Both the position numbers and the translations under genes were made by a program. Below, in pieces: positions 16,107-46,617 of a stretch of DNA of 64,000 bases. The notes below the pieces were generated by a model that was given only the letters and a program-made list of their open reading frames with translations, was not told the origin of the DNA and ran no database searches. Positions within the stretch are counted from its first letter, which is position 1. Every line of letters starts with the position of its first letter. Source of the stretch: Auanema rhodensis (taxonomy: Eukaryota; Animalia; Nematoda); assembly GCA_964057225.1 (NCBI GenBank), contig OZ059897.1, positions 7,316,001-7,380,000 on the forward strand, given 5' to 3'.

Positions 16107-16679
16107 TGACCTCATGCTGATGAGAAGTTGTAGAAATAGGCTGCATGCACATAGATGATACAAGATGGGCATAGGACAGTGTCCTTCGATGAAAAACAAA
16201 TGAATTGAGATAGCAAAAACTATCTTTCAGCCTTATGGAGTTGTGGATTTGACCTCGGGACAAGGCGGCAGGGACAATTGACAATGATTTCAACAATCTA
16301 TTTCTCTCAGCCTCTGGTGGTGGTCGTGGATACTGGACAGAAGTGAACTGAGTAAATAGGAAAAAGCCGATACGATTGACCTCAAACACGAGCCACTGCG
16401 ATGAAATGTGGAACTTGGATTGAAGTGTAATTCTCAAGTTTCCAAATGGCAGCACACACTGACCGCAGTCCATTAGCATGAGAAGAAAGACGGGAGGAAC
16501 GAGATATGCGTACGGCAGTACGGAGGATGACAGAGATAAGCCATAATAGAAATTTGACCATTTCCGGTCAAACAGCAGCAATGCATCAGGAGAACAGACG
16601 GAAGTAATGTTTTCAATCGGACATGAATGACAAGAGATGGAAAGAAGAAGCCGTCTGGTTATCGCCATTTGATGACCTC
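16107..16679. promoter_or_regulatory. Cluster of four same-orientation TGACCTC (GAGGTCA) nuclear-receptor half-sites; candidate enhancer
   Basis: TGACCTC at 16107, 16250, 16377 and 16673 in a GC-richer island. AGGTCA is the canonical nuclear-receptor half-site. Confidence 0.4.
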
Positions 16680-24300: not shown

Positions 24301-24869
24301 TTCAGAACTGAATTTTTCTGTTGAAAAAACATCCAAACAGAGATAATAGATATTTAAGTTTTCTGCTCGTACTGGTTTCCAAGGTAACGTGACTTGCGAA
24401 ATAATAATATTGAGATGGGAGAAAGAGAGAGAGAAAAAGACAGAAAGAGCGACAAACTAAACGTCTTTTATTCTATTTTAGAAAAAGACAGAACGTTTAT
24501 AACTCTTTAGAAGAGTTAGCTACTTGAGAGAGAAATGTATACACATTTAGAGAGGAAGAGAGAGAAAACCTTTTGAAGTGATGCCAAAGTATAGGATAAC
24601 TTAAAAAGAATACGAATAGAGAGAAAAATATATTCTCTTAGCTAACTGGGCTCAAAACAGAAATTCGTCAAAGAAAAAATGCTTAGTTCCGAGATTTACT
24701 AACTACTTATACAACTAGATGAAGGCGTTATACGTAACTATTCAGAAGTAGAAGGTGGAGGAGTTATCGTGAAAAGTAAATGGACGAGTCTTTCTTTCAT
24801 TATATGGTACACATAGTTGAAGATTGAAAAGTGTTAGTATTAGTAGTAGTAAGGGAAGACAAAAACGGT

Positions 24870-24945
<76 letters not shown>

Positions 24946-27900
24946 AAAGAGAGAGAAAAAATACAAGAAACGAGATTTGTGTATAAAAAGAGGAAAGTCG
25001 AGATGGAAGAGGAAGAAATGAGGAGAAGTAAGAGGAGGAGGAAAAGATTGAATCGACCCACATATTCGGGTTTATGATGAGTCATACCGGAATAACGCAA
25101 AGTACTCATGGAGATACAACGGCCATTGAGTAAGTACAAAACTATTTGAGAAAACTTATACGATGTATCATATATATATATATATATGTGATAAAGAATG
25201 GAGAAAAGAAGTTAAAAACAGAAAATGGCAATACAACAACATGTGATAGGAAGAAAGTGGAGTTGGAAAATGACAAATATTCAATATATAAATGTGAATG
25301 AGAGACAAAATTGAAAATATGGGGGAAACATAGCTATACCATATAGTCGACAAATTATTTCTTAGTTTGAAATCTATTCATTATGATCTTTTAAGCAAAA
25401 GAAGCAAGTGATATAACAGCAATATGAGAAAAGGTTGGGTAGGGGGGGGGTGGTTGAAGAGTGTGGAGGAGTGTTGATTGTGTATGAAAACTATACTGAG
25501 TCAGTCAAAGTTTTTTTAATGTTTAATGCTGCGTACACATATAATTCTATTTTTCTTCTTTAATAGAGTAGTCGTGTAGTGGCTCCATGTTGTCAATATC
25601 ACATTCGCATCATCATCATCATCACCATCCCCATCATCATCATCATCACCATCACCATCCCCATCATTATCAGTATGTTGATGGTAATATTTCAATTCAT
25701 ATGAGTTTAACAGAATAGACAGCACGATGGTAGACAACAGCAATGGTAGCAGGAGACACAAAGCGAAGAGAAAGGTTTTTCAAATCCAAAAATAGAGTAA
25801 TTATGAAAGACAATGTAAACGGAACGGAAAGATAGGGGAGAGGGGGGGGGGGTTCTAATTGGAAATTGAGTGGAAAATAGAATATGATGTCGTTGACAGA
25901 CTATGTGGATAACTTCAGCATTACACCGAAATGTTGTCACAACAAAGCTCAGCACTGCTAATCCTTCGTCGTCTGGCGTTTCAAGGATTTCAGCTGTATT
26001 ATGCTGGTGCAGCTAGTTTTTAGCGGCTAGCAAGAGGAAGAAGAAGAAAAATCAAAAAGAAAATCAAAGAAGATAAGTAAGAAGCATGAACAGATGTTGA
26101 GAGTGCGAGCAACAAACCTGTAGAGGACGTGAAAGAGGTGGGGAGTAGAGAAATGTGAAGTTGGGGTAGAGAGGTGGAGCTTGCTTAAAGCCCAGCACTA
26201 TAGATAATGAGCCAATGAGAGGATGAGAAAACAGGTAAAAGAAAGAGACAACGAATAAAATATGACTGAAACTCAAAAAAAATAATATTTTGAAATCGTT
26301 CAAAGCAGAGGGAGGGATGGCTGGCAGGAGAGAGGCAGGAAGCGATGGAGACAAGGAAGAAGCAAGCATTGGAAACATTATCGAAGTCTGCACACATGAT
26401 AGTTCAACAAGTTGTGTGTATGTGTGTGTATGTTATATGTCACCAATCAGCAATTATTGACTAAAGGTGTATTTCATTTCAAAAAAAAAGTGAAAAAGAG
26501 ACATAGGAGCATGGAAGAAACAAAAAATAAAATTCGTCAATTTATCAGTTCAGGTTTTTCAGTAATCTCTTTTACTAATTTCTCTAGCTTAATGTCTTAG
26601 GACTGCTCCAATATACCTCATTATAAGCTCTGACAGATGATGTCAAAGCAACAAAAGTGATGATGAACTTGAAAAAAGAAAAAAAAGCTTTTTCTTCCAG
26701 TCATAAGTCAATCGTTTATGGATGAACGGAAGATAAATATGACTCAAATTGAAAAAAAAAGAGAAAAACCATTGATTGATGTAGTATAGCTATCATGAGA
26801 TAGCATACGAATCATCATAACCAAAATGAATCATTGGATAAGGATGTTTAATCAAACTGATTCTAGAATAAACAGTATGACCTACCGTAATATTTTCATC
26901 GGATGTTCGTAGCTGTTTCAAATGCTTTTCCATAATTTCCTGACTTAGACGTCCGGCTTCAAATTTAACCAAATACGGAAGATTCTATAATGATGTTAAG
27001 TTTATAACAGTGAACTGATAGAACAAGAGAGGGGGGGGGATAAAGTGAGAGACAGGGATAGAGACAATTTTTGGTTAGACAATGAGAAAAAGGAAATGAT
27101 AATTGTGGGAAAGTGAAATATTAGATAAATGAAATGTAATAAATCAAAATGTACTATATAATACATGAATAATACAGTTAGATACTTAAATTCAATTAAT
27201 CAATTACATAATTCTATTTATACTTCTATTTAAAAAAAATAATTGTCTAAAGATGATTTTTGAATTCGAAAACTATGGCAGAGGGGTGGGTGAGGATATT
27301 ACGATTGCCAAATCCCTCTCAGAATCTGTTTTCAACACACAAAACGGTGGATTATTCATTCAGAATATGAACTGAAACTTCAAAATATGACGCAGATTAT
27401 TTTTTCTTTTTTGTAAAACTAGAATTAAAGATATGAATGCAACCGCATGCTAGCACTCATGAACAGAAAATGAAATTCACGTTTTTCCGTGGAAAGGAAG
27501 TGCACGCACAACGTGCTAGTCCTGTGCGGAAAGAGTTGGTTGGACGACGCACAGGGAGCTTTTCAGCCTAATCTCAGTAGACTACAGTGAAGTCAAGATC
27601 AAAGTAGGAAGTTAAACTACATATTAGTTCATGAACATATTTTCTGTTTATTTAGAATTGTATATGTAATCGTATTGTAAATGTTTATTTTCGAAAGAAA
27701 AATGCTAGGTTGCTTAATCTCATTAACAGCTTTTCTTTCACAGCCTTTTTTTCTTAAAACTCATTGAAATAGCTTGTAAGTTGCCTTAACGTTATCACCA
27801 CACCTACACTGACTATGTGATTGGTGATTACCTTGTTCAATTCGGTGACAAGGATTGCGAAAATCATAAGAAGCATTTCAGAAAAAAAAGAAACGCAAAT

Positions 27901-30900
27901 CCTTGCGTTAGAAGGAAGCAAAGACTTAAGGACAACAAATTCAGATAGACAACGTAAGTTTTCATTGAGGTATCTGATGTTATCAACGTTTGACTTGTTT
28001 CCTTTTTGTCTCTCCAAATTCAACTTTCCTCGTCTCGTTTACTCTCTTTTTCCATCCTCTCACACTGCTTCCCGCCGCCATTTTCTCGTTTTTAAAGAGT
28101 TTTCAACGCATTGTTAACATAAACGATTAGTTGAATAAGTAAGGATTGTAAAAGACGTTTTGTCGACGAATATTGGTAAATCAACATCAAATTTCAGTTG
28201 AGACGATAAAAAGGGAAGGGGGGGGAGGTTGCCAATTTCTCGCCTTTCTATTGTATCCGTTGTTTACTGATGAGCAAAAACTCCATATGATCGGGATAAG
28301 CAATTCGTAAGTCACAAGGTAATGAAATCAAAATCAGAAATCAAAAAAACAGAAGAAGAAGACGAAGAGGAAGAATTGAAAATGAAAGAGAACATCACCT
28401 TTGGTGCCATCTCGTCGGGAGCATGCTTGCTCAGCACGAGAGTAACTCGTGCATTCCATGATTGAGCCCATTCGGTCAACTGATTTGCAAAGATAACATC
28501 ATCTACTGTGCGTACACAATAAAGCAAGCAGATCCGACGAAGAGCAGAGTTGGAATTGTCTTCCGACAGTAAATGGTCCACAATTCGTACAAATGGTGCG
28601 ATTCCGGTTCCGGCTGCAGCAATGAGTAGGTGAGAAGCCTGAAAATGATGATGCAATAGAGTTGAAAGATCTCGAGAGATTTTCAGCAAGAGTATATGAG
28701 CAACGAAGCACTCCAAATACTCCAAAACGTCTCATGAGTATATCTTGGAGCACAACATAAGGTCAAATACATAAACCAGCACATATATCATTAAAATACA
28801 AACACATTTTGCTATATCGTAGTCAAAAAGAAAAATAAACAAGTGATTCAAAAGAAAATTCAAATGTAAATTGAAAATAAGAGCACAAGCTTTATGATGC
28901 TTTGAATTTTCATACACCAGCCTCATGAGCAGCTCTGAGAGCATTAAATGTAAATAGACTGTTTTCATTTGTTTTTTTGGCCCCTCATGTTTTGGCCTTC
29001 TGTCCATCATCATCAAGATTTCTTTATCTTTTCAATGCTTGATAAGAAAAGTCATGAGAATGAAAAGCTAATAAAGATTGAATTTCAAGAACTATTCCGT
29101 GTATATAGCCCATTCACTAGATACATACATCGACTGGCTCATGATTACGCATTCCACGTGAACGTCATTCTACACGAAGCAAGGGGTTGGGAGGGAGGGG
29201 GGCACAATTCGGCTGCTTTTTCATCTTTGTTACCGAATTTTCTTGTGTCATATTATCAAATCAAATGAGTAAAGTAGGAATAACATACGTTTTTCCAATC
29301 TTCTTCTTCAGTATACGGACCACGACACTCAATCATATCGCCGACTTGCCAATGACGAACTTGTGCTGATAATTGTCCATCCTTATAAACCTTAAAGGAT
29401 ATTTCGTTTAAAAATTAAACAGATGCTTGATAGTATTAAAGATTAATTCCCAACTCTTGGGCAGCTGCTACCTAGTCTCTGTTTATCTGTCTAGTTTCTC
29501 ATCACTTATCATCATGTTGTGGTCATTTGTGAATTTATCTGTTTTTTTTTGTTTTTTTTTAATAAAAAACAAAAATAAAAACATATTTCTTCTTCTTTTT
29601 CTTCAGAAAAAATATATAAACACGTATGATATGAGCATGTACATGTTGTTAAGTTGGCAAAAAAAGGTTTCAAGTATGTGTATACGCATGTTTGTACATG
29701 CTGAAGCTTTACCTCAACTCTCTAAATCATCATCACCCGTGACAACATCACTCAATTTCTCTTTCAATATTCATAATTTACCTTTATGGGAACTTCGAAA
29801 AATTCTTTTTCAACCCTTGTCGGAGTATACTGACGCGAAATGTAGTGATCATTCAAATTTAACCTACAAAAAAAATTATTTTAGCTGAAAATTTATTCTT
29901 TTTTTTTAATTTATTTATAATTCAAATTATTTTGTTTATGCACAGTTGCTAGTTCCTGAAAAAAAAGATTCAATTTGAAGACAGAAAAATTATTTTTTGA
30001 ATACAATCATAATAGAAATCTTTATTCTTATTTAGATAAATTATGAAGAAAAGTGCGCAGATGAAGATGGTAATACGGAGGAAAATAACATGAATTCTAG
30101 ATATTATTCTGCGTTAACTAGACAAATATTCAGATTAACTCATCTGAAATGTCTGAAATTTGATTTTCAGCATTAAAAAAGAAATGAAATTTGAGAATAA
30201 TTGAAGGTAGACGAACAACGAGACACTTTGTTTGCCCAAACTTCGTTCTATTGGCTTATTTTGGAGATCGTGAAGAAAAAATGCATAGGTCTAGGTGGAG
30301 GATGAGGGTGTTGGCAGAAAAAATTATTTAAAATAGTTTCTATCCTCTATTACTATGAATTACATAGTAATCATAAGGATATATCCCACAAGAGGCAAAT
30401 ATGGCTTTAAGAATGGACCAATAATTGGAGTCATTAGAATGTAATCAACAATCATCCAGTAAGCTTTAAATTGTAATCGACCCCATGATGGGAAAAAGCG
30501 GACATTCGTGTATGAGACATCAACTTTTCCCTGCTCCATACGCTTACGAGCCTGCTCAACCTGAAACAGTGAGATTATTTGAAGCTTAACTTAGTAATAC
30601 AGTATGTAAGAAAATACTCAAGAATTCGTCAAGTACAAACCTTTTGGAAGTTGCAGGTGCCATTGTTATCAGTGAAATGAAATCCGAATCTTCCAAGTTG
30701 CATTAGTTTAGATCCTCCATCAGTTTCACAATCAAGTTGGATGATATATGGAGGATTTTCTTGAGCAGTATACATCCATTCCCATGAGTGAGCAATTCTA
30801 TAAAAAATAAAGATAAATATATGAAATATATAGTTAATAATAGTTTGATATTTGATGATCCCCCCCCCCTCCCCTGTCTTTTTCTCTCTCTTTCTTTGTA

Positions 30901-33900
30901 GTTTGTACAAACAACATAGCCCAACTTAAAGAACTGAGACTTGTAGTTGTGAAATTTAACTGGCATACTTAGGTTAATAGACACTCACAAAACCAGAATA
31001 TAAAACTAAAAAAACATCGAAAAAAAATAAGACGTAATAATAGATTTAGAAAATACTTAAAAAGAAATTATAATGTGTGATTACACACTTCATCTCTTAA
31101 AAATGAACAAAAAACATGTAGCTAAGATAAGAAAATGAAAACACAACCGATCAGCAGGCATTACTATTATAAAATGAAATAATTTGCATAATTATTGTAC
31201 AATCAATCGATATTTGTACAAATAAATAATTTTTAATATTTTCTCCGGAATATCCAGTTTTCATAATATTTCCGTTTTTCTTCTTTATTTTTAATAAGTT
31301 GTCATGAAAATAACTTGCTTGTATCTTGTACTCTAGATGAACTTCATAGCTCATTGAGTAAGGTTAGAGAAGACTAGTGTATAATACGATTTCCAAGTAA
31401 AATATCGTCAAAATACGGTAAAAAACGATATTTAGATTGAAAATAACGAAAAATTGCAAAGTATACTGTATGTCTTCCAAGTGTTTTTCATGTGAAATTT
31501 CAGGAATAAAGAATTGAAGATCTTACTTGTGAGGAATGAATGCACATCGAGGTTTTTCCCAAGTATGGCATTGATGGATCATTACTCCCATATCTGGAGT
31601 ATACCAGTGAGCAAGTTTATCAGAAAGTCGTTCAAAGAATTCCAATGTATCATTGTTGGCACGGATGAAGAAGTTAGCTCCTGAAAATAATAGGAATAAC
31701 TGTTCTCAAATTAGTTCTTTTTTTCTAGTTTTGAGAGAAAGAGAGAGAGAGGATAGAGAGAGATTTCCTTTAAGATTAAAGAATTTCAGAAGTCGAGATG
31801 AAGAAACTATAATTCTTCACCAATTTCCCCAAACCCTCTCTTCTCACCAAACGCATTTTTTTTGAAAATCGTCCAGTTTCCTTCTGAACATTTCAACTAT
31901 TACATACCATAAATAGGCAGAAAATGATGATACATGGAAATAAAAGAAAGAAACTATTGAGAAATAAAAAAAACGACAAAAAACTCTATTTTCTATCTAT
32001 TCATCAGGTATTTTCAAGTTTAACAGCCTTATCTATTTTATATTGAAATGAAAATTCAAGCGTACCGTTTACCCATTCAGCCCTCATGCTGTTCTCATCG
32101 ATACCGATTTGATCAAAGATGGCATCATAAGACATATCATCTTCATATCCCAACTCAAAGAGATTTCTTCTCCAGAATGTATCTTGTTGCATCATCCAGA
32201 AAGATTTTCCTCTTCGAAGTAAAGCAACAGCCAAGTTGGATCGAAGTAAGTAGATTGTCTGATATGGTCCTTCAGCGAAACTGAATGGCTTCTGAAACAT
32301 CATATAGTCTTAATCTGATCACATTTCCGCTAATCTTTAACATTTTCATTAGTTCGCGAGAATTAAATTACTGAATCTTATTGGAATAACTTTCAAACTA
32401 CTTTGAAACAGTGAAATATTAGTATTCCCTTCTCAACTCTATCTAAGTATATTACTGTTTTTCGTTAACTCAATCACATTCCAAACTGTCAATTCTCTGT
32501 AACCTCCTGATTTGTCTAGAATTTCATGTTCTAATTCTGAATGAAATTTCATCACACATGACTGATTTTTCAATAATTCAAATATTATATTCGATGAATA
32601 ATGGTATATATCGAGAATTAACGTCGTCTACATACAGTCGAGCCATCATCATGAATGTCTATAAAAAGAAAAAAGTTTGGGAATGGGCTATGTGTAGACG
32701 ATAGACCTCTGCGAACAAGAGAACGATGATGAGGATGAAATGGATAACTTTCAAATGAACATATACAACATGAGGATGATGACGAACGATGACCTTGCAG
32801 GTTTGACATCCCTCACCTTTCGTCCTCCTAGTACCCTGCATACCATACTCCTGCACCTCATCCCATGCTTTACTCTCTTCGTCCCTCTTAAACTTGGTTT
32901 CGCATCATTTAACACATACGCCTACATTCACAGTCATACTACTCTAAATTTATCGGATTTGCTATTGATCACTTGACCGTCAGACCTTCCGGTAATCCGG
33001 AAAAGAGGAGAAACGTTCTGAAGATAATCGTTTACCAGACGGAATTAGACCAATCTTATCTTCTTTCGCTCCTTCTCTTACTAAATCTCCTTCAAATTTC
33101 CATTCTCTTAAACTCTCTTATAGTATTCTTAGTGGGCTTTCCTCTTAAGTATACGAAATAAGGACAAAAAAATGTTTAAGAAAATCCGAAGAACAATCTT
33201 TGAAGAACAAAAGTAAAATCGAATTTGAAATTGATGATGAATTTGCGTGATTGTCTCTACAAATCAAAAGATCATCTTTCATTTGTTTACGAAAATAAGA
33301 TTGTTCGATTAAATTTAATTAAAGTTGATAATTATGATTTCAATCCGCTTAATTATCGGAATAAATGAGCGAAAACACTTGAAAAAACCCTAAATCAGGA
33401 CACAAATTGTTTTGTGGGCTAAGACTCTGCTGCTTATTATGAACTAGTTTAAACATATTCGAACGAAAAATCGACACTCTTTTCCGGTTTAAACGTTTTT
33501 TTTTGGTAGAGGGGAGGGGGCTTTATCACACTTTATATTAAATATTTTCAGAAGCCAGAAAAAATTTTCCTTAAACAAACAGCAATTAATTTCAAAATCC
33601 CGAACATTCTCAGTTTTTATTTTTATGAAAAAAAAGAAGAAAACTCACATAGAGACTTGGTGTTGGCCAATGGAATTGACGAATTTGTGGCCAAGCTTTC
33701 TTCAATTCATCACGAGCAACTGTATCCAAAGTAACGAAGATGAGACGCTCGTGAACTCCATCGAGAGTGGCGGTGTTACACAAGAAGTTGTATGTCATGT
33801 TGAGAGCATACTGATTCAGAAGTAAAATTGCGGGAGGACGGGTGAATTCGGTATCTAATGTGTGAATGAGGTCTTCAAATTCGGGAGAATTCTCAATCAA

Positions 33901-36284
33901 ACGAATAGCTACGGAATCTCCGTGGCTCTTAACGTAGCGAACGGCGGCAATAGCATTTTGAGTTTTACGGAGAACCAGCAGACCGAATACGAACCAGAAT
34001 CCATAAAAACACAGCATGACAATACGTGAAATCCAGTGCCACTGACGTGGTGAGATCCAAACAACATCTTCAGTTTTACCCACAATTTTCTTCTGTGTAG
34101 TATTCTTAGGTTTCTGTTCTACAGCAGTAGAAGCAGATTTTTCATTCTTTTCACGTTCACTCTTGCTTGTCTGAACGTTACTACCAGCAGTCGAAGGAGA
34201 AATACGATGGCGCAAGCCTGTGCCTGTCGTCATCTGAAACAGACGGCAAATATGAGGATATGTAGAAAGAAGCAAAGCAAAAGTCGTGAAAAAAATGAAA
34301 TAAATGTTAAAACACGGAAAGCTGAAAAATGATTATGCAGGAATGAAATACGATCAGAAAGACAATGAATTAATAAAGAATTCTAATGAAAAATGAATTA
34401 GAAGAAAACAGAATCACATAATTAGGAACACTTATTAGAGCTGACGACTATTTCCGAGCAATACATAACAGCAAAATGACATTTTTTCTAGGAATTGATG
34501 TACAAATGATCTTATTGTTTGATGTTAAACTGTTCGCCAAACCAGTACAACAATTTCGAAGAGGAGGAGCCGAAGTTCATGTTCTATCAATAAGAGTTGG
34601 AAGCATGAAATTGATGAGAAGCAGCTAATGAAGGTGTGTATATGTGCTGACCATCCATGATAAAAATATTATGAACAGAGTAAAAGAGTTAAGTGAATAT
34701 TCTGAGAAAGAGAGAAAGATCGAATGAGAGATTCCTGATTCAGGTGCGAAATGGATGAAAGAAAAACGGTCAAGAAGCGAGACGACCCCTCGACAATACG
34801 TCAAGAAGTACTGATTGCGGTAGATACGAAGACTTGAACGAGAGATAGCAAGTTACGGACATTCTGACGCGTTTTTTTTCTCAAACATTTTCAGAAATAG
34901 TCCGTTCACTGGAATTAGGTTTGAAATGATTGCTGGACGTTGTTCAGAAATGCAGTAAATAGGAAAGGTTGGAAGAGTCTCCAACTGAGATCTGAAAGTC
35001 AGATTGAACATCTGCCTCCGAATTCTGTTCTCAATTTTTGATCAACCAAGTCGAATGAAATGAAAGATATTTCATAAATGATAGAGAATATGCTCGTAAG
35101 GCCAGAAAAATCTCGAAATATCCTATAAAGTAGTTATAAATCGATTTATCGGCTCAATAAAACTTCATCGAATGAACCTCATCGTTGGAACATCAGTCCG
35201 ACCATAGTCAGTAGGAACGATTCTGTTAGATCGATTGATCAGCAGAAGTACATACGCCCGACAAAGTTCAGACGGTAACGCTGACGTAGGCCTTCAACAT
35301 TCTATTCTAGATGAATAGACAACGATAAGTGTAGATGGCAGGCGATTAAGGAATTACTGGATTTTGAGCAGTCGAGTGATATCATCAGGTAAACAGATAC
35401 ATGTTCTCGAATCTCCCATTCTTCCAAGCTCGTCAATCACTTTTGAAAATCATTAACCTTCACATGGTTTAGTATTTTTTTATTTTAAAAAGTTTAAAGG
35501 CATTCGTAAGAAGAAGAAAACTAATGAAACAAACAAAACAAACTATTCAGAGAAACATGGTGCCAATACCAACTTCTACAGAAACTGTACATGTATGTGT
35601 GTGTGTGTGTGTGTGTGTATGTGGTAAACATGTAATATAGATGAGGATGTTTTGGGAAGCGAAAAGAAGTAATAGTTGAACACTTAGAAGAAAAAAAAGA
35701 AGTTCAAGTGAAAGAGAGAGAGAGCAAAAGAGAGAGAGGGACAGAGAGAAAGAGAGAGAGAGACAGGATGGGTAATACTTAGGCAAGAGAAGGAAATAGG
35801 AGAAGACAAGGAACGTATTTCAGGTAGTTTCCGGTTCCTTATGTCTAATTGTGGCGTCTCTGTCTATATATGATTGTCTTCTGTTATGAGCAGGTTGCTT
35901 CATCGAACAATAGCGACCAAGAGAATGTTGGTCATTATTAACAAGTTATCTTTCATAAACATTCTGAGAATGAGACACAGGAAAGAGAAAGAATTTAGGA
36001 TGCTATGCTGCAGGTTGATGATGAAACGAAATGATGATCGAGAGCAGGTTTGAAACATCGAAAGGAAGATTAAGGTAGACGGAAAAGCAAGCACAAAAAT
36101 ATCATAACAGACGTAGATATCAGTCAAGACGTGTATGGCAGTATTAAAGTAAAATCAGTAAAGATAACATCGATAGATCGGCCAAGGCTACCGCAAGTAA
36201 GGCTGGTGTACATTCAACCTTCAGCTATCTCATCCCCCAGGCCACAGGGGGTTGAAAGATAGTAGAGCCTAACGACATGGACAG

Positions 36285-36377
<93 letters not shown>

Positions 36378-39372
36378 AAGAGAAAAGGGAGAAAGAGCGA
36401 AAGGTAGAAGGCAATGATGAAACAGAGAAAAAGAGATTGAAAATGGAAATATAGATAGACAGCCCATAGTTTAGGGCTATGAAGGGAAATAGAGGTCAAC
36501 GTCAGGATGAGTATGACATCAAAGTGTTCCGTGAAAATCTCTAAATAACGAATGTTGAAAGCAAAAAACAGCATGTTTTCAGAAGCAAAAAACCATGTTT
36601 TTATGTGCTCATGGCTAATGCCACGAGAACAAACTAATTAATCTAGTACAATGTGAAGGTATTTCAGAATTGAAGAAGTTGCACAGTTGACGGCAGAAGG
36701 GATTATTGCAAAAAGTGGAGACAGCTAAAGCCTGTAAATGACCCAATTCAGTTCACAAGACCGGCCCAGTGATCCGGCACCCGCATGGTCGGTGGAAATC
36801 GTTGAGTCTCCAAACGTTCAGTGATAATCAGTGCAGCGTAAAAGTGATAAATTATATGCGAACGAGTCTGGCGCTGAATCTCATCCTGGGATGATAAAAT
36901 AGTTCTACTCTTCAAGTTTCAAGCCAAGGATATCGCACTTAAAGATAAAAAGAGAGAATGGACGTCCGAAAAGTTGAATAAGCGTATAATTATGACAAAG
37001 GAGATGAACAGTAGAATGATACTGAATACCATACATTCAAAGAATCTGGAGCAGATCATGACAGCGTTAGAACAATGACTAAAGGATGATTTGCACTAAG
37101 CGATCTGTAAAGGGTCAAAAAGGGACGGCGAGACGGAGGACGGATTGAATCGACAATCATCAAGATGACCTTGCACCCAACCAACTATGTGCTTGGTAAA
37201 GTTAAATTGGCTTGTAATCACGCTTTGTAACAAGAAATCATAGGATTAACCTTCCGATGTTGGGAACTCAAAAATAGCGTGGATGACATATATCAACCTA
37301 GATACAATTCATCAAGCAATTACGCTGAAAACAACAACTTAATGCTACGTTGCTAATATGCTAATATGCTAATTTGATGAACTAAAAATTATGAAAAAGC
37401 GAATTCATTTACACAAGCAATAATCTCTCATGCGGTTGCATTTTACGTTTACATCTTATCTTTTTTCAGCTTATTTTCCAAACATGGCAATTATTAACAT
37501 TTAAAACAACCATTGGATTATACCATGCTCCAAAGCTACGAATTAGCAATGGCGCAAACTACTGATCTATTGCTTAACTATACGGAATAAAGCGTTAGCT
37601 ATAAAGCGCTGTTTTAGTTCAATTTCTTTTTTTTTAAAGCTACTAATCTAATAGACATGAGTCGCCATCAACGACGATATGATGATCGCAGGCATTATCA
37701 ACCCAGGTCTGCTAAACGTGGGGGAGCTGTACCTGATAGGTGAGTAAATATTGTATTTACAACTCCGATTGTTTAATTTTCAGGTGGCTCCATTATGATG
37801 CTGTTGGAAAGGATATAGAAGGAACTAGATTTGTTCCATTTAAGACTCCTCTTCATCCTCATGTTTTCAACAACCCTAACTTGTATGATGATACGTTTCA
37901 TGTAGATATTCTTCTTCAATATGTAAGTTTTCGTTAAGATTGTTAAGTTATATCCATTGTATATAGGCTGCAGAGGCTGGACACTCTATTGGTCTTGTAA
38001 TTGATTTAACTAATACTGATAGATATTATGACAAAACACAATGGGAGAAACACGGAGTGTTGTACGAGTAAGTTGTTTCTGAAGTTAAAACATTGGTTGA
38101 TACACATTGGTTTCAGAAAAGTTCGTTGTCCTGGGCACGAAGTTCACGAAAGAGAAGATGTAGTGGCAAAATTTTTCGCAATTGTAGATAATTATTTCAA
38201 TACACGTAAAGACAGTAAGATTTAAGCTTCGAAACAAGTTTTAAAAAATTTCATTTTTTTCAGCTTCACTTATTGGAGTTCATTGTACACACGGGCTCAA
38301 TAGAACGGGTTATTTGATATGTCGATATTTAATTGAGCGCTTAGGATGGTCCGCTGATCAAGCAATAGCAAGTAAGTTTTCAAAATGCATATATTTTAAA
38401 ATTGTAGTTATGTAGGTTTCGAAGATGCTAGAGGACATCCAATAGAACGACCGCAATACAAAGAGAAGCTTCACGAAGTTGAAGCTCGAAAAGTAATAAT
38501 AGTACAATAGAACAACTAGAGCATATTTTTGAATTTCAGAAAAGTTCTGAGAAATTCGAACAAGTCGAACAAGGTGATGTAGGAAACTGCAATGTAATTG
38601 ATGATAAGGAAGAGGTGAAGTCTAACAATAGTCAAGCTGTACCAGACTTATGATGTCTCTTGTTACAAAAATTGTTGTTATATTGTTGTTTTGTTATGAA
38701 AATCCTACCAGCATTGTTAGAAGAATTGAGTAAAATTAAATATTCTAATTTTGACGGAACTTACGTGAACTAGCATTTTATTTATCAGAGAACTAGCAAC
38801 TGTGCAGGTTGGTTTCACTTTTGAATTTTGAAATATGGTAAATGAGCGCACCTTATTCTTATATGACTAGCGATTGGAATCAGAATTGGCTGTGGAGTTT
38901 TGAGTTTAACAAGCACTGTGTGATCGTTTAGATTTTCAATATGCGCGAGCTCTAATGGTCTGAAATAAAGTATTAGAAAGATCCCCTTAGACTATAAAAC
39001 CTAAATTCAGAAGAAAACCAGTCCTTAGATTCGTTTGTAGGTTCCGAGTCATCGAAAACATGCTCATATAAAGTTTTATCTTCTAAAGCAAGAAAGAAGT
39101 ATTCATAAGACTGTTAATATATACCATGCTTGATAAGTTTACTATATTCTTTTGCCCAGCGAACTACATCATCAAAGTGTATATCGAAAACACATGGTTT
39201 ACATGATTGACCACAACAATCCTGCTCGTTTAAGATAAATATTTGAAAGAGAGAGCAAATAAAAAACCTGAGGAAATGGTTCGTTAGGCTCTTCCTCATA
39301 TGTGTTCCCGCATTCAGTGACATGCTTCCGAACTAGGCGAACAATCTCATCGTCGGCTTTCTTCAGGTTCAT
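18319..39372 (-). CDS. NADH-cytochrome b5 reductase-like protein (CYB5RL-type: N-terminal oxidoreductase-like/OXLD1 Cys domain + FAD- and NAD-binding FNR fold), 9 exons, 335 aa
   Basis: Phase-consistent GT-AG exons: 39372-39268, 39221-39125 ([13 protein letters not shown]), 39082-39001, 38959-38852, 29863-29782 (ISRQYTP, the FAD RxYT motif), 29390-29289 (GQLS...GDMIECRGP), 28638-28399 ([12 protein letters not shown] binding), 26984-26886 (GRLSQEIM), 18411-18319 ([12 protein letters not shown]...RFHS*). They total 1008 nt with no internal stop. Confidence 0.93.
19650..19691 (+). repeat. (TC)n microsatellite
   Basis: Perfect TC run in the last CYB5RL intron. Confidence 0.95.
21235..21315 (+). 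repeat. (AG)n microsatellite
   Basis: About 40 perfect AG units; a further imperfect AG tract lies at ~20960-21035. Confidence 0.95.
24873..24938 (+). repeat. (GA)n microsatellite
   Basis: About 33 perfect GA units. Confidence 0.95.
30360..34233 (-). CDS. Nucleotide-diphospho-sugar transferase family protein (Nucleotid_trans-like, type II membrane), 5 exons, 440 aa, nested on the same strand in CYB5RL intron 4
   Basis: tttcag|ATG at 34233. Exons 34233-33649, 32291-32066, 31680-31527, 30797-30641 and 30560-30360 are all in phase. There is an N-terminal TM segment ([18 protein letters not shown]), then [38 protein letters not shown] and a hydrophobic C-terminus ending YILMITM*. Confidence 0.88.
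36290..36371 (+). repeat. (GA)n microsatellite
   Basis: About 41 perfect GA units. A short (TG)n also lies at ~35595-35618. Confidence 0.95.
37657..38653 (+). CDS. pir-1: RNA 5'-tri/diphosphatase, DUSP11/PIR1 family, 7 exons, nested antisense in CYB5RL intron 4
   Basis: MSRHQRR...VPDRWLHY...[10 protein letters not shown]...[14 protein letters not shown]...VRCPGH...[21 protein letters not shown]...[11 protein letters not shown]. The catalytic [10 protein letters not shown] motif is present. No guanylyltransferase domain follows (stop TGA 38651-38653), so this is not the capping enzyme. Confidence 0.93.
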
Positions 39373-39390
39373 CTAAATTTGGATATTACA

Positions 39391-39907
39391 ATGGCTTGTC
39401 CAAGACATCTAAATAATTTTGAATGTTGCGGAACACTTATAAAATGTCCCTATATAAAGGTAAATATTTGAAAATTTAAATTTGAAAATAGAAATAATTC
39501 TAGGAGCATCATGCTTCACCATTTCATATTGTAAATCACATTTTTCAATGTCGACAATATCATGGTAATACTGAATTGGTGAAGTAAATTGCTATGTTAG
39601 AAAACGAATGTTTATAATGAAAACATTAAGATGTGATTGTAATACAAAACATTTCTTTCCTGAAGCCGAAAGAACGTTTCATGATAAGTATTGCGACAAT
39701 CGAGGGTTTCAAGAGATTTTTAGAATATTATATACAAAACCTGCAACTGATAGTGGTGGAACTTACTTTAAGTTAACTAGAGTTATGATAAACTATTCAG
39801 ATACGGACGACTCTTCCAATATATCTACAGCTGATTTATCAATGGATTCTATGATAGAAGATCAAGGACACAACTTCTTTCTAGATGACTATTGTTCTGA
39901 AGCATAA
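39391..39907 (+). CDS. gtsf-1: Tandem CHHC (U11-48K-type) zinc-finger protein with acidic tail; gametocyte-specific factor 1 homolog
   Basis: ATG 39391; exons 39391-39459, 39504-39583 and 39631-39907 (a possible in-frame 45/48-nt intron ends at 39800). There are two exact C-x5-H-x9-H-x3-C fingers, CPYIKEH-HASPFHIVN-H-IFQ-C and CDCNTKH-FFPEAERTF-H-DKY-C, followed by a D/S-rich tail. This is the GTSF1 architecture. Confidence 0.82.
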
Positions 39908-40085
39908 GGTTACTCAACACGAGATGCGTCAAATGGCTAGTTATTCGGACGTGTCGTTACAGAAAAAAGAAAAAGAACAAGAAAAAAAGAAAAAAATTTA
40001 TTATTAAGCAATTCGCAGAGATCAATCATGTTGCAATCAGTATTGTTATCACCCTTATTACAAGCAGAGCAAAAGAAGCAGTATA

Positions 40086-43000
40086 TTAGAATCGTTTTTT
40101 GTTGTTTTTCTTTTTGTTCTTTTTCACCGAAGTAGAATTTTCGGAACCAGCTGAAACAAAATAAAATATATTGAAAATTTAAAAAAGAAACTACGTTGTG
40201 TAGCCGGAACTTCAGTTTTACTTGCCACAGGATGGTTTGCATTGTTCCCTTTTTTCGAATTTATATTAGCTTCAATGCGTCGTTCAGTCTGAACAGTATC
40301 ATCACTTTGCAGAGAAACAAGTTTGCACGGAAATAAGACTAATACCTGTGTTTTTATGGTTGGGTCACCAATTTGACTTGCAATCGACTGATAGCTGTGA
40401 CTAGCTGAAATGAAACATGAGCATTCGCTACGTAATACTAAATTAACTTGGCATCATAGAAAATCCGGAGCTTTCTATCTTAAATAAATGATTTTCAGCA
40501 GTGAGTAATGGCTTCTCGTCTTCAGATTTACCTGAAAAATGAACATACCTTCAAAGTTTACAACTAAAGTTACTCACATTCATTGTCTGTTTTTCCCTCA
40601 TTGACGGAAGCATAAGCATAGACTGTTTTTGGCTTAAACAACAAATATGGAATGGAATTTAGAGGAACTTTACCTTGATATAAGAAAGCTCGACATCATT
40701 TAAATAACGAGCTTTTTGTCGCTCATTTGTTTCCACAATGAAATCAGATAGAAGAGAAATTAATATACGTAATGAGGGAATAATTTCCTAGAATAGGAAT
40801 TGAAAAATATTTTAAAATTATTTCTCTTTGAAAACTTACGGTTTTTGACATCTGAGAGAACATAACCGCTTGACTGAATAAAACATTAAGCTGAATAGAT
40901 ACAACAGCAGGACGTTGATAGTTCAATCCTGTCATCACATGTTCGGAAGCACTGGAAAATTAAAGTTCTATGAAAATCATCAAAATTAAAGTTACCCAGT
41001 AATATTGGTAGACATGCACATCTTATTTCTTCGCAATAAAGTCATCTAGGAGTCATTTTACTTTACATTTGAAGAAAATTGAATCAGAATACCTCATTTT
41101 CCATATGAGCTCTAGCCAACTCGCAAAATCCTTGAAGTAACTCTTGAGCTATCAGCTTTGGTTCTGCAACTTTGTCCAGTGAACCTTCAAGAACTGGGGT
41201 ATCTTCGCCAACTTCAGGATTGAGAACCTATATATAAACAATCATTTAAGAAATAGCTGGTAGAATCATACTCTCAAATATGCCAACTGAGCTGCTTTCG
41301 CGACGATAAGTATAGGTTGGATAAATTGCAGTCCCCAGTAAGAAAATTCACTCAAATATTTAAGTGTATTACTACAGTGGAAAGGTCCCAGAAGCTTAAA
41401 AAACAAAAAGTTTGATAGAAACATGAACAAATCGAACCTCGATCAACCGATTAAGAAGTGGAGTAAGACTGGCAATTCGAACAGCAGCATACGATCTGCC
41501 TGTGCAATCAACCAAAGCTATAGCAATCTGCTCAACCAATAGATCAGGTAAAGGAGTAATCGCAATACCTAAATAAAGAGTTTAAATCACAAATCACTCT
41601 ACTAGCTAACCTTCTTTTAATAGATTGAGAGTCATGTCAACATCGAATAAGCCGAGTTCAAATAAAGACCGCAAGAAGCAGTTAACCGTGGCAGATTTGA
41701 AATCAACAACAATTTGCTCACATTTCTCTTGAACTGATAAAGGCAATGCTTGGAACAAACCACAAGGAATCTGAAACATATTGATTAATGACATTTCAAA
41801 AATTTGGAACACATTACCTGTTGTTTAGGATTTCCCAACGAGAATCCAAACCATTCGATAAGGCAGTATCTGACCCACCAAGGATTCTGTGACAATTTGT
41901 TAAGAATGAAAGCGGATGACTTTGCACAGAAAACAATCTTGTCGTCTAAAGGGGAAGTAATAAACTGTGAATGTTTTCAGAATCAATACCTCTAAGTTTG
42001 GTTCCCAAAGCTTTGAGAATCAATCTACATAGATTGGACATCTCTGGTTCGTTTTTCTCATATTGAGAGTAGAAGCAATGAATGAGTATAAGCAATTCAG
42101 GTGCAGGAACACTGTGACATTCTAAGAGAAAAAAATGCAAAACTTTGAGACAATAGAGCAAAATTTACTTTTCCAGTCACTACCAACACTATTGGTCCAC
42201 TTGAAAGATGTATCTTTAACTCCAAGACATTGAAGAATTCTGAAGATCAAATGTTACAAAATAAGGAAAAGTTTACTCCAACCTATGAACGATTTTCAAC
42301 AGAGTCATACGTTCCGGACTTGTGATTGAAGCGGACAATAGCTTAGGAAGAATGAAAAACTGGAGAATATCAGAACTATTCAACAAAGCTTCTTCTATAA
42401 CTTCACCAAAAACTTCACGGACAACTTGGCCTGTATTTTTCATAAAAATTACTTTAAATGCTTAGGAACTTACCATCAGGCCCCTTTTCTCGGATTAGGG
42501 CTAGTTTTCTTCGACAAATTGATGTTACAAGGTAGGTATAATTATCTCGGAACTCTACAGAGCCATGTCTAAAGGATAAAAATGGAATAAACCAGAAATA
42601 ATAACGATTAACCTGGTAGCTTCTTTTTCAAAAATCGACTTGAGGATTGTCACTAGGAGAGGTTCTTTAGTTCCTTCAGCGATGTTGAAAGAATAGGCAT
42701 ATAGAGAAGATGAAGCTTGTAAAATTTTCAAAACTCCAGGCACAACAGCCTTGTTATCAACCGAATAAAGAATAAGCTTTTCTGTTGTTTCATAAGGTGA
42801 CATAAGCAAGAAGAACAAGAGCTAAAAGGAAGTTTCTCTAAGGAAAAAATATTATGAATTACCTTATTTTGAATATTTGCAAACTTTTCAACATTTTGCT
42901 GCAAATCATTGTGATCGCCCAAAGAATTTAAATATTGAGTTAGCCGTGTGGAGTATTGCTGAATAAATAATCGATCATTTCTGATTTGAAGAAAGATAAA

Positions 43001-44335
43001 ACCTCAATAAAGCTTTGGTAACAATAAACTTTAGTTGATCCAAGTTTTTCCAATAACAGATGGAACAAAGCATTCTGAAATACAGAAAATATTAAGAAAT
43101 GATATTCTTTATAATTGAAAAAAACCTTGTCTTTTAACCCTGTTAAATCAAAAATTTTCTCCAGAACCTCAGAAAATACTTTAGCATTTGATTCATTTTT
43201 TTTACTGTATAAATTTGACCAATATGGAAGAAGCCTGAAAAAAAAACTTCAACTCAACCAAAGGAAGAACCTTGATACTTACAGTTTGAAAACAGTTTTC
43301 GATGAGTCCGTAGAAAGTTTGAAGTCTTCTGGTAATGAATCAGCAGAAATGCTTTTCATCAGCGCTACATCGTAGTCTTTCTTCTTCAGTTTTTCTTCCA
43401 ACTTAATACGAAAATCATAATATTCAATAATAAAATATTGTCGTACTTTTTTAATTTTTGAAACAAAGTTGTTTTCGGTATTTTCAGGTTCTTGATTAGA
43501 AGATCCAACAGTTACTTCTTCTCTTATGTATATTGGTTCAAGAGATTTTGAACTAGCTGATGAACCCTATAACTGGCTAAGTTAAAAGATGAAAACTATC
43601 AATATGGCAACCTTTTTCAAATGTTCTCTTAGAGGAAGAGGGAAATTATCAAATGACAAGTATACTAGAAAGATATAAATAAGTTGATCATTTACTACAT
43701 ATCTTACCCAGATTTTTCGTAACATTTTCAATTTGATCCATAGTTGTATCAAGTTCACATAACCCTGACATAGGTATCAAACCCTATATTCAATTATTTT
43801 TCCAATTTAAGCAATTCCGAAACATACCTCAATCGTACGACATTTGTATATTTCCCAGAACAATTTTATACGTTCAATTAGCAAGCATTCATCTTCTCTT
43901 GATAAACTAGAAGACAAAAAGAAATGTGAGCCGAAACAAGAGTGTCAACTAACCCCATCTTGATGGATCCTTTTTTGAATAAAGGAAACAAGTCATGTTC
44001 AACGAATTTAAGTAGTTTTATAACTATTGAGGAACATTCAGTTAAAATTTGTTTGTCTTTCGTAGCATTAGACAAAATGTCTGCAAGTAAATAAATAAGA
44101 TTAATGTGTAAAGTAAGAGATCAAGCAAATCTTTGTTAAAGTAAAGTAACTGACCAAGCAATTCTTTGTTATTTCCAAAACAATAATTTGAAAGAGCTTC
44201 AACATTATCATACAAATCTAATGCATACAGAACAGTATTCTCAAATTTGTTTAACTGAAATAGCAAATGCTGACATCAATATATGGATTATATACTTACT
44301 TCCCGCAGGCAGTTTTGAGCAATCACAGCGGCCAT
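40086..44335 (-). CDS. Large multi-exon alpha-helical protein of unknown function with a basic C-terminal NLS-like tail
   Basis: tttgcag-caATG at 44335 (MAAVIAQNCLRE). More than 20 short exons have canonical sites, and the 5' and 3' junctions I checked join in frame (e.g. LLMSPYETTEKLILYSVDNKAVVPGVLKIL). It ends ...KKNKKKNNKKRF* (TAA 40088-40086), with AATAAA at 40002-39997. Confidence 0.8.
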
Positions 44336-45439
44336 TGCTGCAAAGAAACAAATACAAAAATTAGCAACGATAGAAAGATTTGTGGAGAAGAATGACACAA
44401 AAAGAACAAGAACACAGGCAAATTGATAAATAATTCAGGCAGTACTCTGATAGAAATATTAGATATGCATTGCATATCTCTCATGATTCAGCAATAAATG
44501 CCACAGATGGTCAATATTAATTGTCTTAACTGTTGGCAAATGGTACGACATTACAGAAGCCATAAGCCAATATGCGATATGGATTGAAATAAATTATGCC
44601 CGGGTCTTCCTTCGATTTTCTTCTAACAGACCGAAGCAGACCACTGGGCAATTGAGTGTGCTAGCACCATTCACATTCACTGAACATACGTTCGCTCCAG
44701 TCCCATGGGTTAATGCAGAAGCCAATAGTCATTACTACTAACTAGTGAGTGTAATAGTTTAGGGTTTTCAATAAGAGTAATATGAGAAAAAAACAATTTT
44801 TTTCTAATTTTTGATAAATATAAAATAAACACAAATAACCATGAAGCTAGAAAGAGTCACAATTGCATTAAAAGTATTCAAATGAACTCGATTCGCACTC
44901 AATTCTCATTCAAAATGCATTAGAATGGTTTTCATTTAATGTTTGAGTTAATTAAATTAGAGCAAAAACAGTTTTATCACTTTGTATCAAGAAAGCTGAG
45001 AATATTGAAGACGATAGCACATCAATAAATTCAATATTTTCTAAAAAAAATCAACAAGCATTTCGTTATTCAAATTATCATAAGAATTTTGCAATAAACA
45101 GCATAATTAATTGCTGATACATGCTTTTTCAGGTTTTTATACTTCCAAATTAGGGTTTTATTAATATCCAATACTCTCTACCAGAAAGAAGAACGTGCTC
45201 TGCTGAGAAATAAAATGACCCAAGGCTAGATAAATTAACATGCTGAACAATATGTTCTAATTGGAAGCTTCAAGTTCTATTATCAAATTAAAATAAGATG
45301 TTTTCGTTTCAAATTCATGAAAAACGATTTATCCCCAGTTGTAATTTCAAACGTAACTGATTATTTTGCTCGTGAATGCCTTGTGAAGTGGTTGCATTTT
45401 GACTAGTTTGGCTTTCCTTATTAACTTCTTTAACTTCAG

Positions 45440-46617
45440 ATGTTTCGTACACCTCAATTGTACACACGAGGTCGTGGATTTTTATCCTTTATGAGCCCTA
45501 AACAGGGCAAGGAAACTACTGGACAATTGAGTCCTGAACAACAGGTTGTTAATGAGGCGTAGGTACTGTTAATCTCATTTTTCAGGATGCTCTTCGATCA
45601 GCCCTACCTAGCCTTCGTACTGATGCTCCTCGTCATAGTAGAAAAGTAGATGATTCTGATTCTGATTTCGATACTGATCTCATAATGGATAGCCAACTTA
45701 ATATGGATGCTATTAGAGCTAGGGGGTAAGATTTTAGTTTTGATTTTCGAGGATAATTGTGGCCTCTTTAGACAAATGAAATATGCGTACAACTATCAAC
45801 CTCCAGCAAATGTTAAGGATCTTATTCTTAAAGAAGTTGAATCTGTTTTACCTGATGTTTCATCTAAAGATTTATTGAGTTACTCTTTAGCTAATGACAA
45901 TAATGTTAAAGCAGAGGTGAGTAAAGGTTTTATGTTTTTTTCAACTTTCACTGTATTTTTAAAAAATTTTCTTTATTAAGATGATCATTAAAATTTCGTC
46001 AAAGTTCAATCATTATCCAACCAATTCTGTTTTAATGAAGCTTAAGTCTGTTCAAGATCTTATTGAATTCTTCAATACTCCAGTGGAAAATATCAATATT
46101 TATTCAAAGTAAGTTAATCTACGTTAAACAATTTTTGAAAAATGCTCTTAGGCTTGCTCGAACTGAAGATAAACCTTCTAATGTTCATGTTATTGAGCAA
46201 CCTGCTCGTTTCAATCCAAATGACACCGAAGCCTGGCATGGAGGTTAGTATATATTGCAGACTTTTTAATCTCCTGATGATCAATACGTTGCAGGTATCA
46301 CTGCTTTCCCAGGAACTGGTGGTGAGGTAATTAGTTTAAGGAATAAAAGATTGCTTCGTCAGTTTCAACCCAAAAAGGATTGGTTTGACTATGAAGACCA
46401 GGTATATTGTTTATACAAATCTTCTTTGATTTTCGATGTACTTTCAGACATTTGATTATACAAGACCTGAAAAGGACATGCCATGGGATACAGAAATTGC
46501 AAAGAAAATGGACAGGTTTCTTCAACTGTAACCTTTTTTTTTTAATTTACAAATGTTATTTTCAGACATCCTGATAAAAGATACAACTTGTCTACTAAGA
46601 CGTTTAAACGAGTGTGA
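45440..46617 (+). CDS. mrpl-50: Mitochondrial ribosomal protein mL50
   Basis: cttcag|ATG 45440 with a basic/hydroxylated presequence (MFRTPQLYTRGRGFLSFM). Then YNYQPP, H-x-PTNSVLMKLKSVQDLIEFFNTPV, KPSNVHVIEQPARFNPNDT and GGITAFPG. Stop TGA 46615-46617. Confidence 0.8.

Follow-up and report, generated by a model that had tools for sequence, protein, structure and literature searches.

In a 64,000-nucleotide stretch of the genome of the nematode Auanema rhodensis (assembly GCA_964057225.1, contig OZ059897.1, positions 7,316,001 to 7,380,000), four genes are clustered on alternating strands. We call the whole stretch the window and number it from its first letter. Read from left to right, the genes are pir-1 (plus strand), the 5' part of CYB5RL (minus), gtsf-1 (plus) and a gene for an Edg1-type TPR protein (minus), and RNA contigs from public runs show that all four are expressed. 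The two inner genes, gtsf-1 and CYB5RL, are interlocked head to head. Their start codons (39391 on the plus strand, 39372 on the minus strand) are 18 bp apart, and the ATG exon of each opens at a 3' splice site. The 737-bp gap between the pir-1 stop codon at 38653 and the gtsf-1 ATG is occupied by the first four coding exons of CYB5RL, on the minus strand between 39372 and 38852.

A preliminary description of this DNA, made from its letters alone, had noticed the filled gap. It proposed either a pair of opposed operons or promoters located within exons of the partner gene, with sense-antisense transcription forced across about 1.3 kb. The positions on which it relied hold in our rebuilt models and in the RNA: not only the three just named, but also the end of the second minus-strand gene at 40086 and its AATAAA at 40002-39997. 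Where, then, do the RNAs of the two inner genes come from? Our evidence consists of Logan contigs from four public runs of one study (X1 to X4), compared with positions 37500-43499. We treat the runs as RNA because the contigs lack introns.

In both inner genes the ATG-proximal acceptor is cis-spliced to a non-coding leader exon, located on the far side of the partner's coding exons, as read from displayed contig rows or from arithmetic on the contig tables. For gtsf-1, a contig of run X2 has a loose end of ten letters, AGCAACTGTG, before 39364. Extended, this gives a 13-mer whose only match in the window is 38795-38807, with GT after it. The gtsf-1 ATG exon is therefore cis-spliced from a plus-strand exon ending at 38807, and the acceptor 39366/39367 (a slash marks the splice point), one of those singled out in the preliminary description for counting spliced-leader reads, is in use. 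We considered a reverse-strand copy of the ten letters at 29941-29950 as the source and rejected it: the 13-mer with its GT donor matches only 38795-38807. The leader probably opens at the acceptor ATTTATCAG/AG (38788/38789), which would make it a 19-nt exon 48 nt past the end of the pir-1 mRNA. Contig depth in X1 and X2 agrees with a 93-nt ATG exon and an 80-nt exon after it.

The CYB5RL leader was located with the per-contig depth tables, in which each contig has one depth. In X3 and X4, where just three contigs contribute, the other bins are reproduced within 0.2 nt, and the bin 39700-39899 requires 131 extra nt at the depth of CYB5RL. This bin requires 133 nt in X2, with about 10 nt in the next bin, and fits 133 and 9 nt in X1. 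Because 133 nt run up to the end of the bin, the left edge of the leader falls at 39767, exactly at a minus-strand AAA/GTAAGT donor (39766). Exactly 73 nt of the CYB5RL contig lie in the bin 39300-39499, so the contig resumes at 39372, after TTTAG/ATG; the acceptor 39373/39372, also on the earlier list, is used as well. In X3 and X4, which do not cover gtsf-1, the 5' end of the CYB5RL contig at 39897 is within 1 nt of a CUUCAG acceptor, TTATGCTTCAG/AA (39897/39896), and about 84 nt past the end of the Edg1-like mRNA. The 130-nt leader contains no ATG, as is true of 6% of shuffled versions, and it belongs to the main CYB5RL contig in all four runs.

Since both leaders sit past the coding exons of the partner, each primary transcript passes antisense through the other gene, whose exons leave as intron. 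The gtsf-1 precursor extends at least over 38795-39908 and the CYB5RL precursor runs leftwards from at least 39897. The two overlap from about 38789 to 39897, so that the sense-antisense transcription foreseen earlier is borne out by spliced contigs, over about 1.1 kb. The mature mRNAs are complementary at 39367-39372 (6 nt) and 39767-39896 (130 nt). Single contigs connect 29863 to 38852-39372, then to 39767-39897/39908 and on to 39963-39982; another connects 38795-38807 to 39367 and onward. The pair has what defines a head-to-head cis-antisense arrangement, namely spliced, 5'-overlapping transcripts on both strands (38807 to 39367 on the plus strand, 39896-39767 to 39372 on the minus strand). 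Promoters buried in the partner's exons are disfavoured, because both ATG-proximal acceptors receive leaders from past the partner. The features of the locus are collected in Table 1.

Table 1. Positions of genes, exons and introns in the window
Feature	Position	Strand	Remarks
pir-1 mRNA	37563..38740	+	contigs of 833-891 nt, four runs
pir-1 coding exons	37657-37739, 37784-37922, 37967-38067, 38117-38214, 38264-38371, 38416-38492, 38540-38653	+	7 exons, 239 aa
gtsf-1 leader mini-exon, non-coding	38789..38807	+	38795-38807 in RNA; 5' boundary predicted
gtsf-1 intron 1	38808..39366	+	559 nt, GT..AG; holds CYB5RL exons 1-4 antisense
gtsf-1 exons	39367-39459 (ATG 39391), 39504-39583, 39631-39908 (stop 39905-39907)	+	141 aa
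gtsf-1 intron in 3' untranslated region	39909..39962	+	54 nt, GT..AG, 2 nt past stop; X1 loose end behind 39908 is 39963-39982
CYB5RL leader exon, non-coding	39896-39767	-	130 nt, antisense to gtsf-1 exon 3 (codons 96-139); 5' boundary approximate; from depth arithmetic
CYB5RL intron 1	39373..39766	-	394 nt; holds gtsf-1 exons 1-2 and start of exon 3 antisense
CYB5RL coding exons 1-4	39372-39268, 39221-39125, 39082-39001, 38959-38852	-	Oxidored-like domain and start of FAD-binding domain
CYB5RL intron 4	29864..38851	-	8,988 nt; holds antisense pir-1, gtsf-1 leader and same-strand Nucleotid_trans gene
CYB5RL exons 5-7	29863-29782, 29390-29289, 28638-28399	-	model and NAD_binding_1
CYB5RL exon 8	near 26975-26877	-	probable
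Edg1-type TPR gene	39981..44335	-	coding sequence 44335 to 40086 (stop), ~26 exons, ~1023 aa; 5' exons modelled only

The position of the leaders bears directly on the operon proposal. In SL2-type operons the cistrons lie on the same strand, with about 50-400 nt from the upstream 3' end to the acceptor of the next gene. Both pairs have this spacing, from 38740 to 38788/38789 on the plus strand and from about 39981 to 39897/39896 on the minus strand, if the 3' ends of the outer RNAs are taken as the contig ends and the plus-strand leader opens at its predicted acceptor. The preliminary description had cautioned that some 600 nt separated poly(A) site and acceptor, more than the typical 100 nt or so between cistrons. 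That caveat is removed by the leaders, which begin 48 nt and about 84 nt past the ends of the outer mRNAs. Since they do so at consensus acceptors, the inner genes are most likely downstream cistrons. In the mechanism that we propose, they would be the second genes of two antiparallel two-gene operons: read-through RNA from the outer gene would be cleaved and polyadenylated, and a spliced leader would be joined at the acceptor of the leader exon.

The strength of this proposal differs between the two pairs. Spacing, the coincidence with splice sites, conservation and precedent in Caenorhabditis elegans together make it probable that pir-1 and gtsf-1 form an operon. The case for the Edg1-like gene and CYB5RL is weaker, and we consider an operon there somewhat doubtful; that both pairs are operons seems unlikely. 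The interlocked architecture by itself we regard as very probable. Our main conclusion, that the genes are interlocked and that at least one pair is an operon, we hold with a probability of about 0.55.

Comparison with other nematodes, which the preliminary description had suggested, supports part of this picture. In C. angaria the order along the locus (L005 numbering) is a Nucleotid_trans gene and the 3' exons of CYB5RL on the minus strand, pir-1 on the plus strand (8847-9791), the upstream exons of gtsf-1, the 5' exons of CYB5RL on the minus strand and the finger exons of gtsf-1. An AATAAA at 9904 is followed after about 90 nt by CTTCAG/A at a gtsf-1 upstream exon. The upstream exons lie at 10001-10037 and about 10090-10127, the CYB5RL 5' exons (10609-10106) lie inside the next gtsf-1 intron, and the finger exons begin at 10694. 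Because this gene order matches ours, the zipper is conserved, and its plus-strand pair has canonical operon geometry. The shared order, together with the single RNA contigs that cross the A. rhodensis locus, also excludes an assembly join, which the preliminary description had named as fatal to its model.

Three further observations concern the C. angaria locus. The second gtsf-1 exon and CYB5RL exon 4 overlap, at the end of the latter and its donor. The public annotation joins the Nucleotid_trans gene and the FAD and NAD exons of CYB5RL into one 581-aa model (4951-7248). The exons for the CYB5RL N-terminus (10106-10609) have no model and lie antisense inside the annotated gtsf-1.

Elsewhere the neighbourhood is kept in part. 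In Haemonchus contortus, pir-1 and gtsf-1 follow each other on the same strand, 4.1 kb apart and with no CYB5RL between them. In A. ceylanicum the CYB5RL 5' exons face pir-1, and gtsf-1 was not found beside CYB5RL in a locus with gaps and one weak match (E=0.7). None of gtsf-1, CYB5RL and pir-1 was found within 10 kb of the Edg1-like gene of Angiostrongylus cantonensis. In A. costaricensis gtsf-1 is followed by a HAD-hydrolase gene on the opposite strand, and the 2.5 kb of contig that precede gtsf-1 contain no pir-1. In Caenorhabditis sp. 36 an ING gene lies 298 nt upstream of gtsf-1. The linkage expected between cistrons of an SL2-type operon is found for pir-1 and gtsf-1 in C. angaria and H. 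contortus, and it is not found for the Edg1-like gene and CYB5RL. In C. elegans gtsf-1 is the downstream cistron of the lsy-13-gtsf-1 operon (10.1101/271270). It appears that gtsf-1 has exchanged its upstream operon partner between lineages, with pir-1 in A. rhodensis, C. angaria and H. contortus and lsy-13 in C. elegans.

The H. contortus locus also contains extra gtsf-1-like fragments downstream of the main copy, at 12528-12653 and 16664-16801 (L002 numbering), and two near-identical loci, V3C99_011559 and V3C99_011579, are annotated. These sequences suggest a local duplication of gtsf-1 in Haemonchus.

Several results weigh against the operon proposal. No contig end in any of the four runs carries SL1 or SL2 letters, though contigs often lose leaders. 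Nor was a bridging precursor seen: 38741-38794 is without contig cover, as is 39898-39980 in X3 and X4. Polycistronic precursors are rare in steady-state RNA. Contig depths of pir-1 and gtsf-1 differ about 25-fold. The gtsf-1 leader comes from one contig in one run (X2), with an anchor of 13 nt and a depth of about 2.6, and the gtsf-1 contig of X1 opens at about 39367 with neither leader nor extra letters. No contig covers gtsf-1 between 39631 and 39766, and a full-length gtsf-1 mRNA was not seen. The CYB5RL joint from 39767 to 39372 comes from depth arithmetic and is not displayed directly. The next minus-strand gene in C. angaria encodes a kinase, not an Edg1-like protein, and the loci of C. 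angaria, A. cantonensis and A. ceylanicum all lack the adjacency of the Edg1-like gene and CYB5RL. Finally, contigs cannot show where an RNA starts or ends, its strand or its level. Of the earlier idea of two opposed operons, the short true spacers, the conserved succession of pir-1 and gtsf-1 (with its spacer of about 90 nt in C. angaria) and the C. elegans precedent speak for it; the missing SL1 or SL2 letters, the missing bridging precursor and the unconserved minus-strand adjacency speak against it.

Contig depths over the four runs are 75, 78.5, 35.5 and 33.5 for pir-1 and about 3.5, about 2.6, 0 and 0 for gtsf-1, so that the two rise and fall together. The depths of CYB5RL (about 6-7) and the Edg1-like gene (20-31) do not co-vary; with four runs, and contig depth being a poor measure of expression, these patterns are only a hint.

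Could the same data arise from four independent transcription units? The inner genes would then have compact promoters of their own, either in the gap of 50-90 nt between poly(A) site and leader or in the 3' end of the outer gene. The leaders would be ordinary capped first exons, and their closeness to the outer genes would reflect a compact genome. The missing spliced leaders and bridging RNA fit this explanation, as do the strong difference in depth between outer and inner genes and the variation among species in the minus-strand neighbour of CYB5RL. The CYB5RL contig end at 39897 in X3 and X4 could be a start of transcription. However, both leaders have their 5' boundaries at consensus 3' splice sites and not at initiator-like sequence. 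A position 48-90 nt past a poly(A) site is the classic geometry of an operon and recurs in C. angaria, and in C. elegans gtsf-1 occupies the downstream place in an operon. Independent units remain a serious rival, though a less likely account of the locus.

The leader forms might instead be minor by-products of read-through. Here the main gtsf-1 mRNA, and perhaps that of CYB5RL, would start at a promoter within the partner gene and would be trans-spliced to SL1 at 39367 or 39372. Two runs cover gtsf-1 and only one of them has the leader, the X1 contig opens close to the proposed site, and contigs drop rare variants as well as spliced leaders. Against this, the CYB5RL leader is in the main contig in four of four runs, and in the C. 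angaria gtsf-1 model, too, exons precede the antisense CYB5RL exons. This possibility strikes us as quite improbable. It is hardly credible that the junctions are false, produced by chimeric de Bruijn contigs or by a misassembled locus. Where sense and antisense RNAs overlap, unstranded contigs do fuse them, and one X1 contig joins a minus-strand splice to a plus-strand splice. All junctions are nonetheless canonical GT..AG with consensus flanks and a consistent strand, the four runs are concordant, splicing yields a complete FAD-binding domain, and the gene order is shared with C. angaria and in part with two strongylids. An interlocked cluster in which at least one of the two pairs is an operon remains the reading that we prefer.

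CYB5RL extends much farther than the preliminary description had noticed, by 9 kb to the left, with pir-1 in its fourth intron. A loose end at 39267 sets the start of exon 2 at 39221. In all four runs a loose end at 38850 corresponds to positions 29832-29861 of the window. Exon 4 is thus joined to an exon at 29863 by the removal of 8,988 nt, and it follows that pir-1 is nested antisense within intron 4. The protein has an Oxidored-like domain (PF09791, E=2.6e-7), an FAD_binding_6 domain that is intact when exons 4-6 are joined (PF00970, E=2e-14) and, in exon 7, NAD_binding_1 (PF00175, E=3.7e-9). Domains in this order characterize the family, and the top matches are named CYB5RL. The 305-aa model is about 31% identical to NADH-cytochrome b5 reductase-like proteins of echinoderms and molluscs, which have the same domain order. 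We had considered that CYB5RL might be a pseudogene, truncated or frameshifted and with its end near 38720 (the 'VRSFTIF' frame); the junction to 29863 and the intact FAD_binding_6 domain rule this out. Intron 4 also contains a second minus-strand gene, at about 31500-34332, whose exon at 32007-32309 matches Pfam Nucleotid_trans (E=7.5e-15). The order of this nesting is the same in C. angaria.

Near its two ends the same intron carries a 17-nt perfect inverted repeat; its boxes, 38790-38806 and 29939-29955, are 45 nt from the 5' and 75 nt from the 3' splice site, respectively. In 300 shuffles the longest match averaged 8.9 nt, with a maximum of 15, and the duplex of the two boxes has a predicted energy of -36.5 kcal/mol. 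Complementary boxes at intron ends form long-range RNA bridges that aid the splicing of long introns. By analogy, the perfect 17-bp pairing predicted here, so close to both ends of an 8,988-nt intron, might bridge them, leaving pir-1 and the nested same-strand gene in the loop. Two features set the locus apart from such systems: C. angaria does not conserve the pairing, and one box has a second role, the plus-strand sequence of the 5' box being that of the gtsf-1 leader mini-exon.

GTSF1 proteins are small, with two tandem CHHC fingers of the U11-48K type near the N-terminus and an acidic tail. The gtsf-1 product conforms to this pattern, both of its fingers matching C-x5-H-x9-H-x3-C. The protein itself has no Pfam match at E<=0.1, and both an exact-protein look-up and a word-based search returned no match. 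An exhaustive HMMER search found 80 relatives, the top 10 of which all have two zf-U11-48K domains (PF05253); several are named gametocyte-specific factor 1 homolog. The top match, H. contortus GTSF-1, is 35% identical (E=4e-12) and has identical exon breaks. In building the model we rejected a 36-nt intron at 39565-39600, which breaks the frame, for the 47-nt intron 39584-39630, which works and agrees with H. contortus. Another candidate intron, 39757-39800, is unused in the contigs. After the intron in its 3' untranslated region, the gtsf-1 mRNA resumes at 39963 and reaches at least 39982, in an A-rich tract (39963-40006) that is the complement of the U-rich tract following the polyadenylation signal of the Edg1-like gene. 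The convergent 3' ends of the two mRNAs meet or overlap near 39981-39982.

The two outer genes are supported by contigs in all four runs. The six introns of pir-1 are all GT..AG and confirmed in each run, and its contigs end at 37563-37627 on the 5' side and 38730-38740 on the 3' side. Its product matches Pfam DSPc (PF00782, E=1.8e-19) and contains the active-site loop HCxxGxxRT; judged by sequence, it is a PIR-1/DUSP11-type RNA phosphatase with the dual-specificity-phosphatase fold. In C. elegans, pir-1 and sec-5 do not form an operon: the two are neighbours with a common promoter region. The gene beyond gtsf-1, listed as an unknown helical-protein gene in the preliminary description, encodes an Edg1-type TPR protein. 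It matches TPR_Edg1 (PF24293) with E=2e-54 and 185 bits, well above the family cut-off of 27, and is 41% identical to an A. cantonensis protein; the ESM Atlas gave no useful name. The C. elegans protein EDG-1 is an interactor of DEPS-1/PRG-1 (PMC7447803), and the PF24293 family may be that of EDG-1/HERD-1. Contigs of about 3 kb with CT..AC joints cover the Edg1-like gene. Its AATAAA is followed by a U-rich tract, and the contigs end at about 40007. That of X1 runs 26 letters further into this low-complexity tract, which places the mRNA end near 39981, about 16 nt past the AATAAA.

Introns between 37600 and 44400 are compact (44-49 nt), unlike those of the long-intron, repeat-rich region left of pir-1, where long simple repeats, (CT)n/(GA)n and (CA)n, occupy 35550-36480 and 24850-25080. 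Rfam has no match within 28000-46000. The final gene models were built manually with the RNA joints, as a dynamic-programming exon finder over-extended through low-complexity DNA.

How does this locus compare with known systems? It resembles nematode SL2-type operons, such as lsy-13-gtsf-1 of C. elegans (10.1101/271270), in that the neighbours are on the same strand, the first exon of the downstream gene opens at a 3' splice site 50-100 nt past the upstream 3' end, and gtsf-1 would be the downstream cistron. It differs in its upstream gene, pir-1, and in that no SL2 letters were seen on its contigs. A further difference is that coding exons of an opposite-strand gene lie in the first intron of the downstream gene, and that two such units interlock on opposite strands. 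Head-to-head cis-natural antisense pairs (PMC1524920, PMC2330155) likewise have 5'-overlapping coding transcripts on opposite strands, with exon-exon complementarity in the mature RNAs. Here, however, coding exons of the partner separate each 5' exon from the rest of its gene, and that exon adjoins the 3' end of another, third or fourth gene; the arrangement is conserved between distant rhabditids. In CEOP3416, F37C12.14 lies in an intron of a gene of a polycistronic unit on the opposite strand (PMC1657053), as pir-1 lies in CYB5RL intron 4. In our case nesting goes both ways, with each inner gene hosting exons of the other, and affects only a portion of either gene. The single ingredients all have precedents, as operons, as antisense pairs arranged head to head and as nested genes; of two candidate operons that interlock reciprocally, full-text literature searches found no description.

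The architecture has consequences for annotation and for the biology of small RNAs. It illustrates how gene finders fail at such loci: in the C. angaria annotation the nested glycosyltransferase-like gene and the 3' exons of CYB5RL are run together, and the 5' exons of CYB5RL are missing. PIR-1 and GTSF-1 are both components of the ERI complex and its 26G-RNA pathway (10.64898/2025.12.23.696163), and the plus-strand pair joins these two factors of one small-RNA complex. The most far-reaching interpretation is one that we consider improbable: two interdigitated, antiparallel SL2 operons, each with its downstream gene spliced across the coding exons of the other, in a self-sensing locus with an ancestral interlock. 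If both operons fire, sense and antisense RNA would be made in the nucleus over about 1.1 kb, and the mRNAs would form a duplex of 130 bp. A locus encoding PIR-1 and GTSF-1 could then sense, or feed back on, its own 26G endogenous siRNA (ERI) pathway, and the interlock would have been retained since the common ancestor with C. angaria. Were both pairs operons, a single 1.1-kb segment would require polycistronic transcription, trans-splicing and cis-splicing to be coordinated on its two strands. The locus lends itself to the study of transcriptional interference, and of the ways in which nematodes evade endogenous double-stranded RNA or put it to use.

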